Assembly (NCBI GenBank): GCA_964234715.1
Contig: OZ174285.1
DNA: 64,000 bases
Direction: 5' to 3' (one strand)
Origin: Podarcis melisellensis
Taxonomy: Eukaryota
The translations under genes were made by a program, and so were the position numbers. Of the stretch, positions 2,076 to 17,043 are shown piece by piece. The notes under the pieces were generated by a model. That model was not told the origin of the DNA. It saw only the letters and a list, made by a program, of their open reading frames with translations, and did not search any database. Each line of letters starts with the position of its first letter. The first letter of the stretch is position 1.

Positions 2076-4316
2076 CCCCTTCATGGATCACTGCCTTGCC
2101 GTGGCGAAGGGGCTTGAAGAACTCAGAGAAGCTATGAACTATGCCGAGCAGGGCACCCAAGATGAACAGGTCATAGTGGAGAGTTTTGACCAAACGTGAT
2201 CCACCTGGAGGAGGAACCGGCAAGCCACTCCAGTATCCCTGCCAAGAAAACTCCATGGACAAAGACAACAGGCATACACAGTGGAAGTGAGGAACAGGTT
2301 TAAGGATTTAGATTTGGTGGACAGAGTGCCTGAAGAACTATGGATGGAGGCTCGTAACATTATACAGGAGGCAGCAACGAAAACCATCCCAATGAAAAGG
2401 AAATGCAAGAAAGCAAAGTGGCTGTCCAATGAGGCCTTACAAATAGCGGGGGAGAGAAGGCAAGCAAAATTCGAGGGAGATGGTGAAAGATACAGGAAAT
2501 TGAATGCAGATTCCAAAGAATAGCAAGGAGAGACAAGAAGACCTTCTTAAACAAGCAATGCAAAGAAATAGAGGAAAGCAATAGAATGGGAAGAACCAGA
2601 GATCTGTTCAAGAAAACTGGAGATATGAAAGGAACATTTTGAACAAAGATTTCCATAATAAAGGACAAAAGTGGAAAGGACCTAACAGAAGCAGAAGACA
2701 TCAAGAAGAGGTGGCAAGAATACACAGAGGAATTATACCAGAAAGAAATGGATGTCCCGTATACCCCAGATAGTGTGGTTGCTGACCTTGAGCCAGACAT
2801 CCTGGAGAGTGAAGTCAAATGGGCCTTAGAAAGCACTGCAAATAACAAGGCCAGTGGAAGTGATGGTATTCCAGCTGAACTATTTAAAATTTTAAAAGAT
2901 GATGCTGTTAAGGTGCTACACTCAATATGCCAGCAAGTTTGGAAAACTCAGCAGTGGCCAGAAGATTGGAGATCAGTCTACATCCCAATCCCAAAGAAGG
3001 GCAGTGCCAAAGAATGCTCCAACTACCGCACAATTGCACTCATTTCACACGCTAGCCTGGTTATGCTTAAAATTCTACAAGGAAGGCTCAAGCAATATGT
3101 GGACCGAGAACTCCCAGAAGTGCAAGCTGGATTTAGAAGAGGCAGAGGAACCAGAGACCAAATTGCAAACATGCGCTGGATTATGGAGAAAGCTAGAGAG
3201 TTCCAGAAAGACATCTACTTCTGCTTCATTGACTATGCAAAAGCCTTTGACTGTGTCGACCACGGCAAACTATGGCAAGTTCTTAAAGAAATGGGAGTGC
3301 CAGATCACCTCATCTGTCTCCTGAGAAATCTCTATGTGGGACAAGAAGCTACAGTTTAGAACTGGATATGGAACAACTGATTGGTTCAAAATTGGGAAAG
3401 GAGTACGACAAGGCTGTATTTTGTCTCCCTGCTTATTTAACTTATATGCAGAATTCATCATGCGAAAGGCTGGGCTGGATGAATCCCTAGCCGGAATTAA
3501 GATTGCCGGAAGAAATATCAACAACCTCAGATATGCAGATGACACAACCTTGATGGCAGAAAGTGAGGAGGAATTAAAGAACCTTTTAATGAGGGTGAAA
3601 GAGGAGAGCGCAAAATATGGTCTGAAGCTCACCATCAAAAAAACGAAGATCATGGCCACTGGTCCCATCACCTCCTGGCAAATAGAAGGGGAAGAAATGG
3701 AGGTAGTGAGAGATTTTACTTTCTTGGGCTTAATGATCACTGCAGATGGTAACAGCAGCCACGAAATTAAAAGACGCCTGCTTCTTGGGAGAAGGGCAAT
3801 GACAGGCCTAGACAGCATCTTGAGAAGTAGAGACATCACCTTGCCAACAAAGGTTCGTATAGTTAAAACTATGGTTTTCCCAGTAGTGATGTATGGAAGT
3901 GAGAGCTGGACCATAAAGAAGGCTGATCGCCGAAGAATTGATGCTTTTGAATTATGGTGCTGGAGGAGACTCTTGAGAGTCCCATGGACTGCAAGAAGAT
4001 CAAACCTCTCCATACTGAAGGAAATCAACCCTGAGTGCTCACTGGAAGGACAGATTGTGAAGCTGAGGCTCCAGTACTTTGGCCACCTCATGAGAAGAGA
4101 AGACTCCCTGGAGAAGACCCTGATGTTGGGAAAGATGGAGGGCACAAGGAGAAGGGGGCGACAGAGGACGAGATGGTTGGATAGTGTTTTCGAGGCTACC
4201 AGCATGAGTTTGACCAAACTGCGGGAGGCAGTAGAGGACAGAGGTGCCTGGCGTTCTCTGGTCCATGGGGTCACGAAGAGTCGGACACGACTAAACGACT
4301 AAACAACAACAACAAC
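2076..4316 (+). mobile_element. BovB (RTE-clade LINE), internally deleted and frameshifted
   Basis: BovB-type 5' end (atggatcactgccttg...). RT fragments: CSNYRTIALISH, QAGFRRGRGTRDQI, FIDYAKAFD, GVRQGCILSPCLFN, LRYADD. (CAA)n tail; 11-bp TSD AAGGTTTAGTG at 2065-2075 and 4317-4327. Frameshifts or stops near 2515, 2640 and 3350. Confidence 0.93.
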
Positions 4317-4517: not shown

Positions 4518-4869
4518 AAAAGGTAAAGGGACCCCTGACCATTAGGTCCAGTCGTAGCCGACTCTGGGGTTGCGGCGCTCATCTCGCTTTATTGGCCGAG
4601 GGAGCCGGCGTACGGCTTCCGGGTCATGTGGCCAGCATGACTAAGCCGCTTCTGGCGAACCAGAGCAACGCACGGAAACGCCGTTTACCTTCCCGCTGGA
4701 GCAGTATCTATTTATCTACTTGCACTTTGACGTGCTTTCAAACTGCTAGGTTGGCAGGAGCAGGGACCGAGCAACAGGAGCTACCCCATCACAAGGATTC
4801 GAACCACCGACCTTCTGATCGGCAAGTCGTAGGCTCTGTGGTTTAACCCACAGCGCCACCTATGTCCCT
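4518..4869 (+). mobile_element. Sauria SINE, full length
   Basis: Characteristic Sauria SINE sequence; TSD TTTTCTGTACAGTA at 4504-4517 and 4870-4883. Confidence 0.9.
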
Positions 4870-5821
4870 TTTTCTGTACAGTACTAATCTTTTAAAGCAG
4901 AAGTGGGGAACCTTCAAGCTGCAGGTCAGTCTTGCCCCACCAAGGGATCCAAATTGGCCTGCAAAACCATTTCCCCTAAAGCATGGCCACCAATGACATC
5001 ATCTGATGTGTAGGAAGGTGGGGGTTAAAGTCTGCACTCAATGCACATGACTGGTGAATTAATCCTGCTCAGTTTGGCAAGATTCTATGCAAACCTCTTC
5101 CTGATTCAGGAAGGGATTTACATGCCTGTTAAAATGAAGGGGGGAAGGAAACCCTGTTTTAGCAACACTTTGAATCTGACATAATGGTGATGCTGGCCGA
5201 CTAACAATGGGAGGCTCTGCCCACCTCTCACATCTGGCCCACAAGGCAGATCCAGCTAAGGACCTGGCCTGTGGAGTCCAAAAGGTTCCCTTATCCACAC
5301 TTTAAAATGCTCATCCTTGGGCCTCAGAGGAAGATGCAGTAATTTTAGGGAGTGTAAATCATTAGAAGAATTACCAGATTCAGGAAACCCCTGAAAAACT
5401 GCTTGCAAGGAAAGGGGAACTTTCCTTGCTGCTGATAGCACAGATGGCCTTTAAAACCATAGGACATCTATGACACACTAACGCGTCTTCAAAATTTAAA
5501 TACTAGTAGACTGTGTGTCTTTGTGTAGTATAAACACAGAACCAATGGTTGTTGTTTTTTTTAAAAGCACCCCTGCAGAGTGTCTTTTAGCACCTTGAAG
5601 ATTAGTTGTGCACCTGGTACCTTCATTCTACAGTTTTGTCATTTGCTGAAGACACACCTTTTTATCCTGGTCTTTGGCACTTGTGATATATATATGTTTA
5701 GGATTCGCTTTAGGCGTGACTGTAATTTGTTTTGAATTGTTATTAATGCTGTATTTTATATTGTTATGACCCACTCTGGGACCTTCTTACAACAGCAACA
5801 CATTTATTATCACATAGCTTT

Positions 5822-5958: not shown

Positions 5959-7047
5959 GACTAGAATCTACTTCATCAAATGCTTGTGCCATATGTGTTG
6001 GTCTTTAAGGCGCCACAAGACTGTTGGGTTTGCTGCAAGAGACTCATATGTCTACCCTTCTGGAAACATTTTCAAGTTGTATTCACAAGTCATCGTCCCC
6101 AAACCTCCCAGAACTTACTACAATATTTTGATGCTTAATTTTCCTTGTTACATTTTATCATAAAGCATTATTTCTACAAACAGAGTAGCTATGACAGAAG
6201 AAGAGGACCCAGGAAATCTGACAGGCCTTTTAAAGTTTACTCTTTAAAGCTATATAAATCAGAATGAAATGTAAACATTGCTAAATGTAATATTAGGAGA
6301 TCTGACAAGATGAAGCACAGTCTCACCAACAACCTTGTCTTAGCATCAGAGTGAAAGGCTGTCAGCATTTCATTTATATACAATGTGTTCTGAAAAGAAA
6401 CAATTATAACTAACATTTTCCATTGCAGCAGCTTTATTTAAAACAGAGGTCAACTTTTCAGTCTCAAGAGAATGCTACAGAAAAACCACATGTAAAATCC
6501 TGTTTCCTGTGAAACGGGGCAGATGTTTTTATGTAAGCAAAAGCAAATCATAACTCTGCAGGACCAGCAAAGGACCAGGATCTAACTTATATGATGGCTG
6601 AGTACCCACAAAAAGAGAAGTTAGAAATCATTGCAATTAGGTCTGAGTTGCTTTGTCTCTTCAGAAGACAGCTGTGGAGGCATGTGCTTTGAAGCAGCTG
6701 CAGAGTCTAAAACTAGACGGGCAACTATTTTGAGGTTAGGTACCAATGGCCAAAGATATAGCCAAGTTCATTAATATTAGATAACTTGCAGTAACTAATT
6801 TTGCCTTGTGCAAGGATAGTTCCAGTTTGTATTTCTGTGCATATCAAAACTACAGGGTTCTGGCAGCCTAGCAAGAAATCAATATATTGTACAGGAGAAG
6901 TAGTTTACCTAGGGTCCTCCAGACATTGGTGAACTCAAACTCCTGTCACCCCACGAAGCACAGCCAAGGATCAGGGATGATGGGATTTGTAGTACAGCAA
7001 CATCTGGACATCACAATTTAGCCACAACTGCTGTACAGCAAACTTAG

Positions 7048-7455
7048 TGTCAGGGAACTGACATCTAAAGCGCAGGAGGCGCAAAGGCTCACTGAGGGTG
7101 AGAGAGCAGTAGCAGCGGAAGAGGGAACCAGTAGAGGGCGAGCAAGAACTCCAAGGGAAAGTGAGTCGGAGGGATGGCTCAGAGACGCTTCAAGCGAAAC
7201 CAGTGGGGAGGTCTCAGGACCTCCTATAGGGACACCCACACCTCGACGGAAACTGTCACGCCGAGAGGCCAGACGACGTGTTTCCGTTAAGGAGCTTTTA
7301 TGTTGGAAACGTTTCCGAAAGCAGCCACTTTCGGATTCTACTAGTGATTGACGCAGCCATGCTGGAGGGGCTCCGTCACAGGCAGAGGTTTGAAAGCCTG
7401 ATCAAACTCTGAGGGACTTGCATTTTACGCACAAGCAGCTCATCGTCCCATCACA
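7048..7455 (+). repeat. 5' LTR (408 bp)
   Basis: TGTCAGGG...CCATCACA, direct repeat of 12138-12545. Confidence 0.97.
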
Positions 7456-7457
7456 GC

Positions 7458-7468
7458 AATCCGAAAGT
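7458..7468 (+). other. Self-priming primer binding site (AATCCGAAAGT)
   Basis: Starts 2 nt after the LTR; no TGG tRNA-type start; exact reverse complement of LTR positions 7327-7337 (ACTTTCGGATT). Confidence 0.8.
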
Positions 7469-7501
7469 CTCCGAAAGCCAGCTTGTGCAGGGAGAAGCAT
7501 C

Positions 7502-8521
7502 ATGAGCAATCCAGCCGGAACCGGGGAAGCAGGAGCAGCTGGAGGAGGTCCAAGCCTGGAAGAAAGGTACAGGGCGTTGGAGATCCAGTTGGCGCTGCAA
7601 ACGGCGAGGCTTGAGGAGAGGAGGGCTCAGGATGCAGAAAAGGGAAAGGAGAAAACCACCCCGCTCGCCAGAAAGGTGCCAGGATTGGTGCAGAAATTCG
7701 GGGGGGATCCCAGGAACTATCATGCCTTTAGAACAGAGATGCAATACGCTCTAAACTTGCAGTTTGATGACTTCCCCGATGAGGAATCGCGAGTGGCGTA
7801 TGTGATTGGCCATCTCGAATCCGGGGCGAAAGATTGGGTTAGACCCCTGATGGCAGCGAATAATGAGATCTTAAAGGACACGAGGAAGTTTTTTCGTGCC
7901 ATGGACCTGATGTTTTCCAGCGATATTGAGCAGGGGGTGGTGCGAAGGCAGTTAATGGCTTGCCAGCAAGGAAGCAGATCTGTCCGTGAGTACTGGACTG
8001 AATTTACCATGTTGATTCACAAATTGGGGTGGGACCTATCGGCGGAGCCCATCCAAATGCTTTTCGAAGAGGGGCTTTCTTCAACCGTCAAAGATGAGCT
8101 TTCCCGGGGCCCCAGGGCGGAGTCTATGGACCAGTTAACCAAATCTGCGCTGGCCATAGGAGCGCGCCAGGAGGCGAGGGCTATGGAAAAGCGGGAAGGG
8201 AAAGGAGACCGTTGGAGGGAGTTCCGCATTCCAGACATTCCAGAGCCACCTTTCCCGCCGGCAGAGCCGATGGAAGTTGGAACAGCGCGGGCGCGCGCAG
8301 TTTCAAATCCCAGTGAAGGGCGGAAAAAGGAGGGAAAGAGCGCCAAGAGATGTTATCTCTGCCAACAGCCAGGGCACTTTGCCAGAGTTTGCCCACAAAG
8401 AAAGGAATGGCAAGGGATGGCAGGAGCTGTTGGGGGAAAGGAAGAGGAAGGCAAGGAGCAAGTAAAAGCCAACGCCTGGCTGCCACCGTTGGGGCACAGC
8501 AGCCAGGCCAAAGAGCAATGA
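7502..8521 (+). CDS. gag: Gag (retrotransposon capsid plus CCHC zinc knuckle)
   Basis: First ATG after the LTR (MSNPAG). Sushi/PEG10-like capsid region (FGGDPRNY...QQGSRSVREYWTEF) and knuckle CYLCQQPGHFARVC. Confidence 0.92.
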   Translation: MSNPAGTGEAGAAGGGPSLEERYRALEIQLALQTARLEERRAQDAEKGKEKTTPLARKVPGLVQKFGGDPRNYHAFRTEMQYALNLQFDDFPDEESRVAYVIGHLESGAKDWVRPLMAANNEILKDTRKFFRAMDLMFSSDIEQGVVRRQLMACQQGSRSVREYWTEFTMLIHKLGWDLSAEPIQMLFEEGLSSTVKDELSRGPRAESMDQLTKSALAIGARQEARAMEKREGKGDRWREFRIPDIPEPPFPPAEPMEVGTARARAVSNPSEGRKKEGKSAKRCYLCQQPGHFARVCPQRKEWQGMAGAVGGKEEEGKEQVKANAWLPPLGHSSQAKEQ

Positions 8522-11500
8522 AAGTGCCCATGCCAGAACCCCCCAGACCCGCTTTAGTGATAGAGGTGTTACTAGAACTGCCAAACGGACACCCACTAAA
8601 GGTCAAGGCGCTTTTGGATTCAGGCAGCTCCTGTAATTTCATGAGTAAGGAGTTTGCAGCTGAGCACCAGATACAGACTATCCCTTTAAGTAACCCCTTG
8701 CAGGTGACTACGATTGACGGCAGAGAGCTGTTGGGGGGAGAAGTTAGCCAACAGACTGTCCCGATGATAATGAGAGTGGCAAGGCACACCGAACAGATAG
8801 CGTTTAATGTGGCCATCCTGGGAGGAGCGCCCATCATTTTGGGGATGAGCTGGCTGGCGCTACACGATCCGCTAGTGGGCTGGCATCAGAGGGTGGTCTC
8901 CTTTGGGTCAGCACATTGCCTAGAACACTGCAAGGAGGGGAAGGTTTCGGGAGGAGACAGAGTCACCCTAGCGGGGATGGAAGTGATGGACAAAGGGAAG
9001 GTGCCCCCGCAATACGCAGATCTGAGCAACGTATTCAGCGAAAGGGAAGCAGACAAACTGCCACCGCATAGACCCTTTGACTGTCAAATCAACCTACTCC
9101 CAGGGGCCCAACTCCCAGTAGGCAAGCTGTACGCCATGTCAGACAGGGAGATGCAGGAGCTGAGGGAGTTCATTGACAAAAACTTGAAGCGAGGTTTCAT
9201 CAGAGAGTCCCGAGCGGTGGGGGGCAGCCCAGTGTTCTTTGTGGACAAAAAGAACACAGACAAACCGAGACTGGTGTGTGACTTCAGGGCCCTCAATGCA
9301 GTGTCGGAGCCCCTGGCTTTCCCTATGCCCCGAATTGATGACATTTTGACCAGAGTAAGGAAGGGAAAGATTTTTACAAAACTGGACCTGCGGGGGGCGT
9401 ACAATCTGATACGCATAAGGAAGGGAGATGAATGGAAGACCACCATGTTTACCCCGTTGGGAGCCTTTGAATACCTCGTTATGCCCTTCGGTCTACAAGG
9501 GGGCTCCGCGTGTTTTCAAGCTTTTATAAACCACGTTCTGGGACCTTTGCTCTACAAGAATTGTGTGGCCTTTTTAGACGACGTGTTGGTGTATTCGGAA
9601 AATGAGGAACAGCATGTGAGGGACGTTCGAGAAGTGTTGGGCAGGCTGCAAGCCAACCAGCTGTGGGTGAAACTGGAGAAGTGCCAGTTTCATACCAAGG
9701 AGGTGGAATTCCTGGGGTACCGCTTGTCAGACAAGGGATTGGCCATGGATCCAGGCAAGGTCCAAGCGGTACTGGAATGGAAGACACCGAAGACCAAGAA
9801 GGACGTGCAAAGATTCTTGGGATTTGGGAACTTTTATCGGAAGTTCATCAAGAACTTTGCCCACTTGACGGCGCCCATCACCGACTGTCTCAGCAGCAAG
9901 AAGAAATTTGTTTGGACGGCAGAGGCGGATCGAGCCTTTGAAGAACTGAAAAGGGCTTTCGCCTCGGAAGAACAACTTCTGCATGTGGATTTACGAAAAC
10001 CCATGAGAGTGGAAACAGATGCATCCGACCGGGCGGTAGGGGCGGTCCTTCTTCAACCGGGGAGGAGTGCGTCGGAGTGGAGACCGTGTGCCTTCTTCTC
10101 GCGGAAGCTGAATAAGTCCGAGAGGAATTACACGGTGTATGACAGGGAACTACTTGCCATTCACGAAGCATTCCGGAGGTGGAGACATTTATTAATTGGG
10201 GCACAACACAAGGTGCAAGTGTGCACCGACCACAAAAATTTAGAGTATTGGAGAACAGCTCGAGTGCTCAACCAACGACAAGTGAGATGGGCACAGGAAT
10301 TCTCCAAATTTAACTTTGAGATTTGTTATGTGCCAGGCCCAGAAAACGTCAGGGCGGACGCGCTCTCACGCAAACCAGAATATTGGGAAGGGGAGGGGGT
10401 GATCGAAGAGAGACATGTCATCCCGGAGGACCGCTGGGTGTGTGGGGCGGCGATGGTGGGGCAACGAGAACTGGTGGAGGAAACGGAAAATGATGAATAT
10501 GCCCAGGATAAGCTCAGAGGTCTCAGGGGGGAGGGCGAGAGCCCCGGAGGTTTTGAGGAAAGAAATGGGGCATTGTATTACAAAGGGGCACTGTATATAC
10601 CCGAAGGTGAATTGAGGGGGAGAGTACTCAAGCAGTTGCATGATAGCCCCACGGCGGGACATTTTGGGCAACACAAGACCATGTGGTTGGTTACCAGGGA
10701 ATTTTGGTGGCCTAAGGTGAGGGAAGATGTAAGGGAGTATGTAAGAGGGTGTGACCAATGTCAGCGAGCCAAAGGGGAAAGAAGGGCGCCGGCAGGGTTA
10801 TTAGAACCTTTACCCACACCAGAACGGCCTTGGGAAGCGATATCAATAGATTTTATGACGGATCTGCCAAGGTCCAAGGGGAAAACAGCCATCATGGTAG
10901 TAGTAGACCTGTTAACTAAGATGTGCCACTTTGTAGCATGCTCACATGCAGTCACAGCGGAAGAAACGGCGAAGTTGTTTGTGGAACATATCTTTAGGTT
11001 GCACGGGGCTCCCTCGAGGGTGATCTCAGATCGAGGCAAACAATTTACTTCCAGGTTCTGGAGGAAGCTCATGAGCTTGTTACACGTGGAAGTCAATTTT
11101 TCAACTGCCCGGCACCCTGAAACCAACGGGCAGGCGGAAAGGGCAAATGGCATTCTTCAACAATATCTTAGGTGTTATGTCAATGACAGAGAGAACGATT
11201 GGGTCGAAAAGTTGGCGTTGGCAGAATTTGCCTACAATAATGCGGAGAATGTGTCCACAGGGATGAGTCCCTTTTTGGCTAATTACGGGTGTCACCCCAG
11301 GGCATTTCCAGGGGAAGGAGGGGAGAGATGGAGCGTCCCAGCGGCTGAACATTTTGTAGAAGAGATGGAAGCCATCCATCAGCAGCTCCAGCTCAACTTA
11401 GAAAGGGCTAAGGCACAATATAAGAAGCAGGCAGACAAGAACAGAAGGGAAGGTGAAACCATAAGGGTGGGGGATCAAGTGTGGTTGTCAACCCAAGGGT

Positions 11501-12441
11501 TGCCGTTCAAAGGGGGTTGTAAGAAACTGAGGCCCAGAAGATTGGGACCCTTTGAGGTGATTCAGCAGGTCAACCCGGTAGCTTTCAAACTCCGATTACC
11601 CAATCACATGAAATTGCACCCAGTGTTCCACAGGTCGTTACTGTCACCATACAGGGGAGGAGGTGAAGGGGAGCACGTCAGGGAACCAGCCTTGGAAGAG
11701 AGGGAACGCCGCAACCATGTAGCGGAAATCCTCGATTCCAGGTGGAAGGGAAATCAGGTGGAGTATTTAGTGGCGTGGGAAGGGGAACCGGAGTCAGAAA
11801 ACACCTGGGTAAGTGCGCAGGAAGTCAATGACGAGGTTTTAACAGAAACGTTCCATCAAAGGTTCCCGAGGAAACCTCAGCCGATAGCAAGGTCTAGGAG
11901 GGAGTATTTCGGCACCACCGATGAGGAAGAGGAAATGGAAGGGTTCGCGGAGTCGGAGTTGGAAGAGGGAGTGGACTCTGATGACGAAGAGTACCTAGAG
12001 AGTAGGAACAGCAACAAGTGGAAGGAAGTGTTCGCGACGTCGGAAGATGAGGGAGGTTCTTTCAAGGGTTTTACCTCCTCACCGCCAGTAGGAGAGGAGA
12101 CGGGAGGGGGTGAAGGGGGCCCTGGAGGGGAGGTGGATGTCAGGGAACTGACATCTAAAGCGCAGGAGGCGCAAAGGCTCACTGAGGGTGAGAGAGCAGT
12201 AGCAGCGGAAGAGGGAACCAGTAGAGGGCGAGCAAGAACTCCAAGGGAAAGTGAGTCGGAGGGATGGCTCAGAGACGCTTCAAGCGAAACCAGTGGGGAG
12301 GTCTCAGGACCTCCTATAGGGACACCCACACCTCGACGGAAACTGTCACGCCGAGAGGCCAGACGACGTGTTTCCGTTAAGGAGCTTTTATGTTGGAAAC
12401 GTTTCCGAAAGCAGCCACTTTCGGATTCTACTAGTGATTGA
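8350..12441 (+). CDS. pol: Pol: protease-RT-RNaseH-integrase-chromodomain plus C-terminal tail, probably expressed by -1 frameshift
   Basis: Protease LLDSGS; RT MPFGL and FLDD; RNase H ETDAS; integrase HHCC (HDSPTAGH...CDQC), DDE (IDF, SDRG, QAERAN) and GPF; chromodomain HVAEILDSRWKGNQVEYLVAWEG. Overlaps gag in the -1 frame. Confidence 0.95.
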   Translation: MLSLPTARALCQSLPTKKGMARDGRSCWGKGRGRQGASKSQRLAATVGAQQPGQRAMKVPMPEPPRPALVIEVLLELPNGHPLKVKALLDSGSSCNFMSKEFAAEHQIQTIPLSNPLQVTTIDGRELLGGEVSQQTVPMIMRVARHTEQIAFNVAILGGAPIILGMSWLALHDPLVGWHQRVVSFGSAHCLEHCKEGKVSGGDRVTLAGMEVMDKGKVPPQYADLSNVFSEREADKLPPHRPFDCQINLLPGAQLPVGKLYAMSDREMQELREFIDKNLKRGFIRESRAVGGSPVFFVDKKNTDKPRLVCDFRALNAVSEPLAFPMPRIDDILTRVRKGKIFTKLDLRGAYNLIRIRKGDEWKTTMFTPLGAFEYLVMPFGLQGGSACFQAFINHVLGPLLYKNCVAFLDDVLVYSENEEQHVRDVREVLGRLQANQLWVKLEKCQFHTKEVEFLGYRLSDKGLAMDPGKVQAVLEWKTPKTKKDVQRFLGFGNFYRKFIKNFAHLTAPITDCLSSKKKFVWTAEADRAFEELKRAFASEEQLLHVDLRKPMRVETDASDRAVGAVLLQPGRSASEWRPCAFFSRKLNKSERNYTVYDRELLAIHEAFRRWRHLLIGAQHKVQVCTDHKNLEYWRTARVLNQRQVRWAQEFSKFNFEICYVPGPENVRADALSRKPEYWEGEGVIEERHVIPEDRWVCGAAMVGQRELVEETENDEYAQDKLRGLRGEGESPGGFEERNGALYYKGALYIPEGELRGRVLKQLHDSPTAGHFGQHKTMWLVTREFWWPKVREDVREYVRGCDQCQRAKGERRAPAGLLEPLPTPERPWEAISIDFMTDLPRSKGKTAIMVVVDLLTKMCHFVACSHAVTAEETAKLFVEHIFRLHGAPSRVISDRGKQFTSRFWRKLMSLLHVEVNFSTARHPETNGQAERANGILQQYLRCYVNDRENDWVEKLALAEFAYNNAENVSTGMSPFLANYGCHPRAFPGEGGERWSVPAAEHFVEEMEAIHQQLQLNLERAKAQYKKQADKNRREGETIRVGDQVWLSTQGLPFKGGCKKLRPRRLGPFEVIQQVNPVAFKLRLPNHMKLHPVFHRSLLSPYRGGGEGEHVREPALEERERRNHVAEILDSRWKGNQVEYLVAWEGEPESENTWVSAQEVNDEVLTETFHQRFPRKPQPIARSRREYFGTTDEEEEMEGFAESELEEGVDSDDEEYLESRNSNKWKEVFATSEDEGGSFKGFTSSPPVGEETGGGEGGPGGEVDVRELTSKAQEAQRLTEGERAVAAEEGTSRGRARTPRESESEGWLRDASSETSGEVSGPPIGTPTPRRKLSRREARRRVSVKELLCWKRFRKQPLSDSTSD

Positions 12442-12545
12442 CGCAGCCATGCTGGAGGGGCTCCGTCACAGGCAGAGGTTTGAAAGCCTGATCAAACTCT
12501 GAGGGACTTGCATTTTACGCACAAGCAGCTCATCGTCCCATCACA
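12138..12545 (+). repeat. 3' LTR (408 bp)
   Basis: Identical to 7048-7455; preceded by the PPT GGAGGGGAGGTGGA. Confidence 0.97.
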
Positions 12546-12577
12546 CTTAGATATGTAGTGGCTGTAAACAATGCCTA

Positions 12578-12725
12578 GAGTCATAGAATCATATAGAATT
12601 GTAGAGCTGGAAGGGACCATGAGGGTCATTCAGTTCAACCCCCTGCAAGAATTTTTCACTGAATGTGGGACTTGATTGAATACATGACTCTGAGATTAAA
12701 AGTATTATGTTCTACCAACTGAATT
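12578..12725 (-). mobile_element. tRNA-headed, CR1-tailed SINE (Squam-like), degenerate
   Basis: Minus strand reads a tRNA-like head (TCAGTTGGTAGAACA...) and a CR1-type tail (ccttccagctctacaattctat...attctatga). Confidence 0.55.
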
Positions 12726-14426
12726 ATCATGAAAACAAATAGTAAACTGTGTTGTTGTTTTTTGAGGGGGGGTTATAATCAAGTAGTGTATAAATGTTAT
12801 GGAATAAAATATTTTTTGATGAAATAAATAGTGCAAAGACGTTTATTTAATCCACATGATGAGTTATGGAACATGTATAGCATGCTGCATAGAGACAGCT
12901 ACTCAATGTAATTCAAGCAGCTGTTTCCTATGCACCACCCCCAAAGTAACATTTCCATGACTAATATAAAAAACACTTCAGGATTAACCACAGTACTCCT
13001 ATGAAATTTAAGGATGACTGGTTTCTAAAACTCAGAGCTGACCCTGTTCATGCTATTAAGATTCGCTGTCAGAGCTTGCAGCATAGTGAAGGCAAATATT
13101 TGTTATTTGAGGAACAAAAGATGTGCATGACAATGACTCATCCTAGAAAAAAAAATTCTTGGGAAATTATACACTCTTAGGGATAGGAAGAACTGGAATG
13201 ACCTAAAACTAATTAAGTCATAATGGAACACCTAATATCCTGTTTCGACCAAACATTTCCAAAACACACTGTCCAAACTTTAATTCTTTTTTGGTGTTTT
13301 TAAGAATGTGCAGGAACTAGAATGCTTCTGCAGAAATTTTTTTAAAGTTGTTTCTGTTCTATCAATCTCCAGCAGTTTTCCTTGAATAAAATGTCAATAT
13401 TCTAGGTTATATACCTTGTAGCTCTTCTACCAGTGTGGATAAACTGAGGAGAGGTCCACCATGTTTGGTTAATAAAAACTTTACAGCCATGTTTTCCCCC
13501 TCTTTCTAGTAGCAAGTGAAGCAGAGATTTCTCACTCCCCCTTCCAAAGCAGCCAAGTACATGCATGGATCACACTTGTAGGGCCATCTGGTTACAGATG
13601 AGTGAGGAGGACATTTAAGTGCCCCTGACGAAGGCATTTATGAAGGCGGCTGGCCTGCTAAACCTTTGCTGCATGGATAAGCCAACACGAAGCCCCCAGT
13701 ATGTTGTTAGACTCCAGCTTCTATCAACCCAAGCTAGCATTGGCAAATGAGAGATGTAATCCAACAGTACCTGCAGGGGAACATGCTTATCCAGTTTTAT
13801 TATTTTGCTCCTCAGATACTCAGTCTCTTATTTTCTGCTTGTTTTCAGCACCATCCACCATTTTCCTGCCCATCCATGCCATACTCACAGGTTAGGAAAT
13901 GTACTGTTTTTTACATAAAAGAAAGGAGAAACCCTTCTGCTTCACAAAACATGCCACAACTACTGCATCCTGGCACAAGATATAGTTTACCTACATTCTG
14001 AAGTAGTCATCTCTGCATCCATCTGCCTACATGTGGCTTTATATTTGTGGTGGAATGTAATCAGACGCTTTGCCTGGAATTGCCCTAGTGACCAAACTAC
14101 TGAATTTGTGGATTGCTGAAACACATAATGATATTCGCCTTCTACTGCAAATGACTTTACAGATGTGCAACATATGCTTATTCAGAATATAAGAAATATG
14201 TCGGTAATGTTGCTGTTGATTCAGTTTATATTTTGCCCTTCCTCCCAAAGTAGCCCAGTGTGCAAAGAGATTGTTTTTACAATTTTTAAAAGGTATCAAT
14301 CACATTCTCTCACCCAATGGTTTCAGGCTTCCTAGGAGCAACATCTTTCAGCCTGCGTAAAAAATAACATATTGAAATTCCTTCTGAAAGCCAATAATGA
14401 GAGAAATAGACACCTCACCTAGGATA

Positions 14427-16196: not shown

Positions 16197-17043
16197 CAGT
16201 GGTGCCCCGCTAGACGAATGCCTCGCAAGACGAAAAACCCGCAAGACGAAAGCCCATAGGGAAATCTCGGGGACCTTTTTTTAAATGCTGGCGGTGGGGA
16301 GCAAAGCCTTTCCCCCCCCTCCGGACTTCAGAAGAGGTCCAGGAAGGCCGGCGGGGGCGAAAGGCTTTGCTCCCCACCGCCAGCATTTTAAAAGCGTCCG
16401 GGATAGCAGGGAAGCGCTTCCCGCTATCCCGGACGGCTTTTGAAGGCAGGCAGGGGGGCAAAGACTTTTGCCCCCCCTGCCTGCCTAACCGGGGGCTTTT
16501 AAATCGCCCCGGGACTGTCCGGGGCGATTTAAAAGCCCCCGGACGGCTTTTGAAGCCTCCCCCCGCCGCCCGGCTTTGGGGCATCGTCCCAATGCCGGGC
16601 GGTGGGGCAGGAACGCCTCCCCCAGCCGCCCGGCATCGGAACGATGTCCCGAAGCCGGGCGGCCGGGCGGGAAAGCCTCCCCCCGCCGCCCGGCTTCGGG
16701 GCATCGTCCCTATGCCGGGCGGTGGGGCAGGAAAGCCTCCCCCAGCCGCCCGGCATCGGAACGATGTCCCGAAGCCGGGCGGCCGGGCGGGAAAGCCTTT
16801 GTCCCCCCTGCCTGCCTTCCCAGGGGCTTTTAAATCGCCCCGGACAGCGGAGAAGTCCTCCGCTGTCCCGGGCGATTTTAAAATGCCGCCCGCCAGAAGA
16901 GGTCGGGGGAAGGCTTTTTCCATAGGAACGCATTAATTGATTTTCAATGCATTCCTATGGAAAACCGTGCATCGCAAGACGAAAAACTCGCAAGACGAAG
17001 AGACTTGCGGAACGAATTAATTTCGTCTTGCGAGGCACCACTG
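16197..17043. mobile_element. Tc1/mariner (pogo/Tigger-like) non-autonomous element with GC-rich internal repeats
   Basis: TA|CAGTGGTGCC...GGCACCACTG|TA termini, repeated subterminal CGCAAGACGAA motifs, and four internal 60-bp units. Confidence 0.85.

Follow-up and report, generated by a model that had tools for sequence, protein, structure and literature searches.

To our knowledge, reverse transcription primed by an element's own RNA has been proven experimentally only in fission-yeast elements, while vertebrates have contributed sequence signatures. The self-primer of Tf1 is reportedly 11 nt long, which is also the length of the predicted primer in the lizard element described here. Ty3 of Saccharomyces cerevisiae, which has the same domain order as this element and provides its closest solved structures, is tRNA-primed, its primer being the initiator tRNA-Met, whereas the lizard element is without a tRNA-type PBS. 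Two papers state that self-priming is described or implicated from fungi to vertebrates (PMC6317226, PMC4600332, citing Butler et al. 2001). According to a third, self-priming together with a 'pretzel' of three duplexes is a common feature of Tf1/sushi elements, including those of vertebrates (PMC10085805). The pretzel, which the same paper reports from Lin & Levin and from Butler et al., consists of a central self-primer/PBS duplex and two further duplexes, in which letters adjacent to the PBS pair with the LTR downstream of the primer (PMC10085805). For vertebrate chromoviruses, both self-priming and the pretzel were proposed from sequence (Butler et al. 2001, J Mol Evol 52:260, as cited in PMC10085805, PMC6317226, and PMC4600332).

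The element lies in a stretch of 64,000 nucleotides from Podarcis melisellensis (contig OZ174285.1), hereafter the window. It resembles Tf1/Tf2 of Schizosaccharomyces pombe, Tj1, Tosmo1-3, and Tcry1 in its chromodomain integrase with a Tf2-1-type SH3, in the lack of a tRNA PBS and the presence of a self-primer at the predicted 5' end of the RNA, in a PBS just past the terminal CA of the LTR, and in a potential three-duplex pretzel with a crossing arm (PMC10085805). It differs from this group by its vertebrate host, by a U3 copy of the PBS that can pair with the primer, and by an LTR with no canonical poly(A) hexamer; Tf1, moreover, has a single ORF, whereas gag and pol of the lizard element lie in overlapping frames (-1). 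With sushi-ichi and other vertebrate Tf1/sushi elements, compared here through papers citing Butler et al. 2001, it shares the status of a vertebrate chromovirus with self-priming proposed from sequence, and it differs from them by its squamate host, its short R+U5 (129 nt), and the absence of AATAAA. Among squamates, Piskurek et al. 2009 reported a chromodomain gypsy element of full length from Anolis (cited in PMC3899998). The chromodomain Ty3/gypsy element of Anolis carolinensis and an element of Gekko japonicus are likewise full-length squamate chromoviruses, with Pol 46-47% and 44% identical to that of the lizard element, respectively, but both belong to different families with unrelated LTR letters. 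The gecko element has the spacer GA and a 10-nt PBS; TATATAT precedes its primer by 32 nt, and it shares the U3 hairpin of the lizard element. From the analysis below we conclude that, in this intact, very recent lacertid chromovirus, the primer of reverse transcription is most likely the element's own RNA and not a tRNA.

Anatomy and age of the element

The identical LTRs, the open gag and pol with their domains, and the data on its family identify the element at 7048-12545 as an intact, very recently inserted Ty3/gypsy chromovirus of Tf1/sushi-like type (Table 1). Its description as intact and very young in the earlier note is thus borne out by the 408-bp LTRs without a single difference, the 5-bp target-site duplication, and the two open frames. 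Pfam searches of Pol identified protease, RT, RNase H, integrase H2C2, rve, Tf2-1-type SH3, and chromodomain, and the succession of gag, protease, RT, RNase H, and integrase is the Ty3/gypsy order. The chromodomain (PF00385, E 1e-8) occupies Pol residues 1124-1171 at the integrase C-terminus and is preceded by SH3_Tf2-1 (PF24626, E 3e-19). The nearest solved structures to Pol were those of Ty3, namely 7q5b (E 1e-137) and also 4ol8. The top protein matches of the element were Podarcis muralis entries with 94-96% identity, and its own closest subfamilies have Pol sequences 86% and 54-57% identical; outside the vertebrates, the best Pol matches were fungal chromoviruses (39-42% identity), with a plant one at 36%. 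No further copies of the element were found within the 64-kb window. Of 24 public runs, all of them Logan contigs, four were compared with the window; they showed no molecule starts, ends, or strand, and in the contigs of one of them (organism D) the family was present at very high summed depth.

Table 1. Positions of the features of the lizard element in the window, with the evidence for each
Feature	Positions	Strand	Evidence or remark
5' target-site duplication CTTAG	7043-7047	+	5 letters flanking both LTR ends; second copy 12546-12550
5' LTR, 408 bp, TG...CA ends	7048-7455	+	100% identical to 12138-12545
Putative AT-rich TATA-like box TTTTATGT	7296-7303	+	31-24 nt before 7327; similar boxes in relatives
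U3 copy of PBS core TCCGAAAG, pairs with 7328-7335	7314-7321	+	Inverted repeat, shuffles, fold
Predicted self-primer ACTTTCGGATT; would be nt 1-11 of the RNA and the beginning of R	7327-7337	+	Inverted repeat, shuffles, initiator match
Arm of the inner flanking duplex; partner 7450-7456; 7 bp with a single bulge	7341-7348	+	Minimum-free-energy fold of 7327-7501
U5 arm GCACAAGC of outer (crossing) duplex	7429-7436	+	Inverted repeat; fits third 'pretzel' duplex (PMC10085805)
Inner duplex partner, U5 end and first spacer letter	7450-7456	+	Minimum-free-energy fold
Spacer GC between LTR and PBS, 2 nt	7456-7457	+	LTR boundary; 1-2 nt in relatives
PBS AATCCGAAAGT, complementary to 7327-7337	7458-7468	+	Inverted-repeat search, shuffles
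Second, shorter PBS-like copy TCCGAAAG, 8-bp alternative primer partner	7470-7477	+	Inverted and direct repeats
Leader arm GCTTGTGC of outer duplex	7481-7488	+	Inverted repeat
gag ORF, 339 aa: Retrotrans_gag, Ty3_capsid, CCHC knuckle	7502-8521	+	ORF list, Pfam
pol ORF, -1 frame, ATG 8350, open from 8317	8350-12441	+	ORFs, Pfam, structure search
Run GGAGGGGAGGTGGA adjoining 3' LTR, putative polypurine tract	12124-12137	+	Sequence
3' LTR, 408 bp	12138-12545	+	100% identical to 7048-7455

The pol frame passes through the polypurine run and then through about 100 codons of the 3' LTR (12138-12441) before its stop. Within the gag/pol overlap, the heptamer GGGAAAG occurs at 8332-8338 and 8434-8440 in the gag frame, and both occurrences are candidate -1 slippery sites, similar to the PEG10 site GGGAAAC. 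The contigs of all four runs often break or join in the flanks of the element at 6971-7008 and 12593-12629, and in the runs guessed to be RNA the depth at these flanks was several-fold above that of the element; the insertion site therefore seems to lie among older interspersed repeats. Farther downstream, at 16553-16792, the window carries a tandem array of about four 60-nt units, whose copies are 78-100% alike.

Primer/PBS pairing in the lizard element and its relatives

The PBS AATCCGAAAGT is the exact reverse complement of ACTTTCGGATT inside the LTR (11/11 nt, inverted repeat I2), and the match is exactly 11 nt long because C-C clashes bound it on both sides. When the LTR letters were shuffled, a complement of at least 11 nt starting no more than 4 nt past the LTR end was obtained in 3 of 20,000 trials in one series and in 0 of 5,000 in another. 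The leader from the LTR up to the gag start codon at 7502 contains no TGG (7456-7500 checked), so the 3' end of a tRNA cannot pair within the 45 nt past the LTR; a PBS of the type found in tRNA-primed Ty3/gypsy elements, about 10-18 nt long and starting with TGG, does not follow the LTR. A search of the window and of 11 relative loci found no tRNA genes, and a phage search likewise gave nothing. The core TCCGAAAG is present three times, at 7314, 7460, and 7470, and was recovered by the repeat search as I4, I5, and D1. The earlier note had asserted this triple occurrence, the absence of a tRNA-type TGG start, and an exact 11-nt complement 2 nt past the LTR, and each of these statements proved correct, with all coordinates exact. 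Among the 40 differences listed, of 397 found in the contigs of the public runs, none falls in either 11-mer. Exact look-ups of the lizard gag and of the nearest Podarcis protein returned no contigs.

For comparison, eleven loci encoding Pol relatives (39-49% identical) were fetched. Seven of them were used, and as one (L010) holds two elements, eight elements were compared (Table 2); L003, L004, and L007 were left out for want of LTR sequence, and L009 (Absidia) for an assembly gap before gag. In all eight relatives, an LTR ending in CA is followed by a spacer of 1-2 nt and then by 9-11 letters complementary to a site in the element's own LTR, and this layout is the same although the LTR letters are unrelated. 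Shuffles reached the observed match in only 1-16 of 5,000 trials (L001, L005, L008, L010 inner, and L011).

Table 2. Spacer, PBS, and predicted primer of the eight related elements
Element	Source	Spacer	PBS	Primer
L001	Gekko japonicus	GA	TTGCCAGCAC	GTGCTGGCAA
L005	Prochilodus	G	AATACTTCGC	GCGAAGTATT
L008	NCBI assembly	G	AAGACTTCGC	GCGAAGTCTT
L010 inner	Labeo rohita	GA	AGCCCGGAC	GTCCGGGCT
L010 outer	Labeo rohita	GA	AGACCAGAC	GTCTGGTCT
L011	ENA contig	T	TAACTTCTTT	AAAGAAGTTA
L002	Logan contig	TC	TTGTTTGCCTC	GAGGCAAACAA
L006	NCBI contig	GT	TTGCTAGACT	AGTCTAGCAA

The LTRs and leaders of three fish families (L005, L008, and L010) can be aligned, and their primers and PBSs fall in the same columns. 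In this alignment, 29/30 cells pair and 6/10 pairs have changed on both sides, a covariation that belongs to these three fish families and not to the lizard element's own closest subfamilies. Conservation of the pairing and its covariation in relatives are thereby established, as are the anatomy of the lizard element and the chance statistics given above. The compensatory changes that the self-priming reading of the earlier note had called for are thus present in relatives. With a complement of 9-11 nt kept in eight relatives and both sides changed in three families, self-priming by the lizard element is supported, as judged from sequence comparison. In Labeo rohita, one element of the self-priming type is nested in the leader of another (2835-12747 of L010), with inner LTRs at 3513-3972 and 8225-8683, outer LTRs at 2835-3247 and 12375-12747, and the duplication ACAAT; each of the two nested elements carries its own primer/PBS pair.

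Predicted start, U3 hairpin, and leader fold

On the basis of motifs, the RNA is predicted to start at 7327 or only a few nt away. As read from the sequence, CCACTTT (7325-7331) is a full match to the initiator YYANWYY with its A at 7327, and the AT-rich letters at 7296-7303 depart from a canonical TATA box. In 7/8 relatives, L011 being the exception, a TATA-like box precedes the primer site by 23-32 nt, a distance that would put the start no more than about 3 nt from the first primer letter. These boxes and the initiator match speak against the variant in which the element self-primes with something other than the exact 5' end of its RNA, the start being upstream or a few nt off. With an upstream start, the U3 letters 7314-7321 would be part of the RNA; in either case the primer would be freed internally or from a 5' hairpin of another shape. 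This variant gains from the poor quality of the lizard box as a TATA, from an initiator-like TCAYT located 3-4 nt before the primer in the gecko and fish relatives, and from the strong local hairpin 7314-21/7328-35, which spans the predicted start; on balance we consider it unlikely and prefer a start at or very near the first primer letter.

Signals for the 3' end of the RNA were scored in the same LTRs. Neither AATAAA nor ATTAAA is present in the LTR of the lizard element (7048-7455) or in that of the gecko element (4791-5501). In the fish relatives L005, L008, and L010, AATAAA follows the primer and stands 51-76 nt short of the LTR end, as in the Sushi LTR model (PMC3601003); with the primer at the beginning of R, this order would be expected. 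In L011, an AATAAA and the first letters of the primer overlap. In the lizard element, the distance between the first primer letter and the LTR end is 129 nt, giving an R+U5 of 129 nt versus 270-333 nt in the fish elements. The same distance is exactly 298 nt in L001, L005, and L008, which may be chance.

The lizard and gecko LTRs also share a hairpin between U3 and the primer. In the lizard element, the pairing 7314-21/7328-35 was matched by 3/1000 shuffles and by 0/56 other LTR windows; in the gecko element, the partner of the primer is GTTGCCAGCAG at -17..-7, a pairing reached by 2/1,000 shuffles, and no other window of that LTR was as good. The hairpin has 8 bp in the lizard element (7314-7335 and 12404-12425) and 9-11 bp in the gecko element (5187-5213 and 10311-10337), the U3 copy standing 5-17 nt before the predicted start, and both hairpins were present when the 3' LTR was folded in its context (gecko z -3.76). 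It was not significant in L002, L005, L006, L008, L010, or L011. The two LTRs with the hairpin are also the only two without AATAAA. The letters of the half-sites differ between the two hosts, which favours a structural role over a shared protein-binding site. This hairpin may be the only new point of the analysis, a lead drawn from the sequences of two families. One speculative possibility, which we regard as rather doubtful, is that in squamate members the U3 copy of the PBS would act as an 'anti-primer' that binds the primer only where U3 precedes it, leaving the true 5' end as the sole free partner of the PBS. If so, the primer would be held in a duplex at the 3' end of the RNA or in read-through transcripts. 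As both LTRs lack AATAAA, a role of the hairpin in forming the 3' end is another possibility.

Around the primer, the three potential duplexes of the lizard leader match the pretzel of the published descriptions, the side arms being weakly supported candidates. The minimum-free-energy fold of 7327-7501 includes the primer/PBS duplex and the inner duplex 7341-48/7450-56; being nested, it is without the stem 7429-36/7481-88, because that stem crosses the central duplex. The latter stem, GCACAAGC with GCTTGTGC, exists as the earlier note described it (inverted repeat I6), but its 8 nt are by themselves within chance (expectation about 0.07). Both flanking duplexes are short and neither is significant alone, and the fold of the whole 5' UTR is no more stable than those of shuffled sequences (z -1.2). 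A search for side-arm duplexes in the relatives gave no clear recovery, and at 7345, within the inner arm, the copies of organism A have T>C, a change that would cost the inner duplex one pair.

This ordinary stability of the fold, together with the fourfold occurrence of the 8-mer within 165 nt (both orientations counted), would suit the idea that the complement has another role, such as packaging, dimerisation, or translation control, or is a by-product of motif repetition, while priming proceeds in some other way. In the repetition variant, a protein-binding motif TCCGAAAG would be present three times and its complement once. The relatives, however, lack such motif repeats and pair at the equivalent position through entirely different letters, and a pairing that is kept while its letters differ is not explained by a shared protein site. 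The complement is also located 1-2 nt past the terminal CA, which is where the minus-strand primer must sit, and the leader offers no other candidate PBS. We therefore judge these other roles very improbable as replacements for self-priming. Just as improbable, judged from the sequences of the elements themselves, is priming at or near 7458-7468 by a host RNA, for instance an internal segment or a half of a tRNA, modelled on copia or Ty5-type elements and with the LTR match incidental: half-tRNA priming is known in other LTR retrotransposons (PMC6317226), but no TGG stands in the 45 nt past the LTR, and a conserved host RNA does not predict PBS letters that differ among the eight relatives, are matched each time by the element's own LTR, and have changed on both sides in six pairs.

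Proposed course of self-priming and its meaning

For self-priming from the RNA 5' end, we infer the start site, the RNase H cut, and the priming itself as follows. By analogy with Tf1, transcription would begin at 7327 or a few nt from it, and the first 11 nt of the RNA would fold back on 7458-7468, closing a loop of 120 nt. The duplexes 7341-48/7450-56 and 7429-36/7481-88 could steady this fold, the latter crossing its centre and thereby giving the 'pretzel'. The element's RNase H would then cut after nucleotide 11 (7337/7338), and RT, starting from the 3' end thus released, would copy the GC spacer, U5, and R into minus-strand strong-stop DNA. As the primer would be copied later, during plus-strand synthesis, the PBS would be rewritten from the primer in each cycle; the two 11-mers would in this way stay perfectly matched, and covariation would come readily.

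The self-priming layout of this element is a good new example of a known mechanism. Of what the earlier note had put forward, the layout itself is real, but two points go too far: self-priming is already the common view of Tf1/sushi elements, including those of vertebrates, and chromodomain gypsy elements of lizards have already been described. Because published work treats self-priming as common in this group, the lizard case adds a member and not a new mechanism, and by itself it opens no new question. With its identical LTRs, open gag and pol, and exact 11-nt pairing, the lizard copy is a clean amniote case, to which the very high copy number of the family in public lizard data adds. In essence, nine elements including that of the lizard, with changes on both sides of the pairing, strengthen the case for self-priming as a general trait of the vertebrate Tf1/sushi elements.
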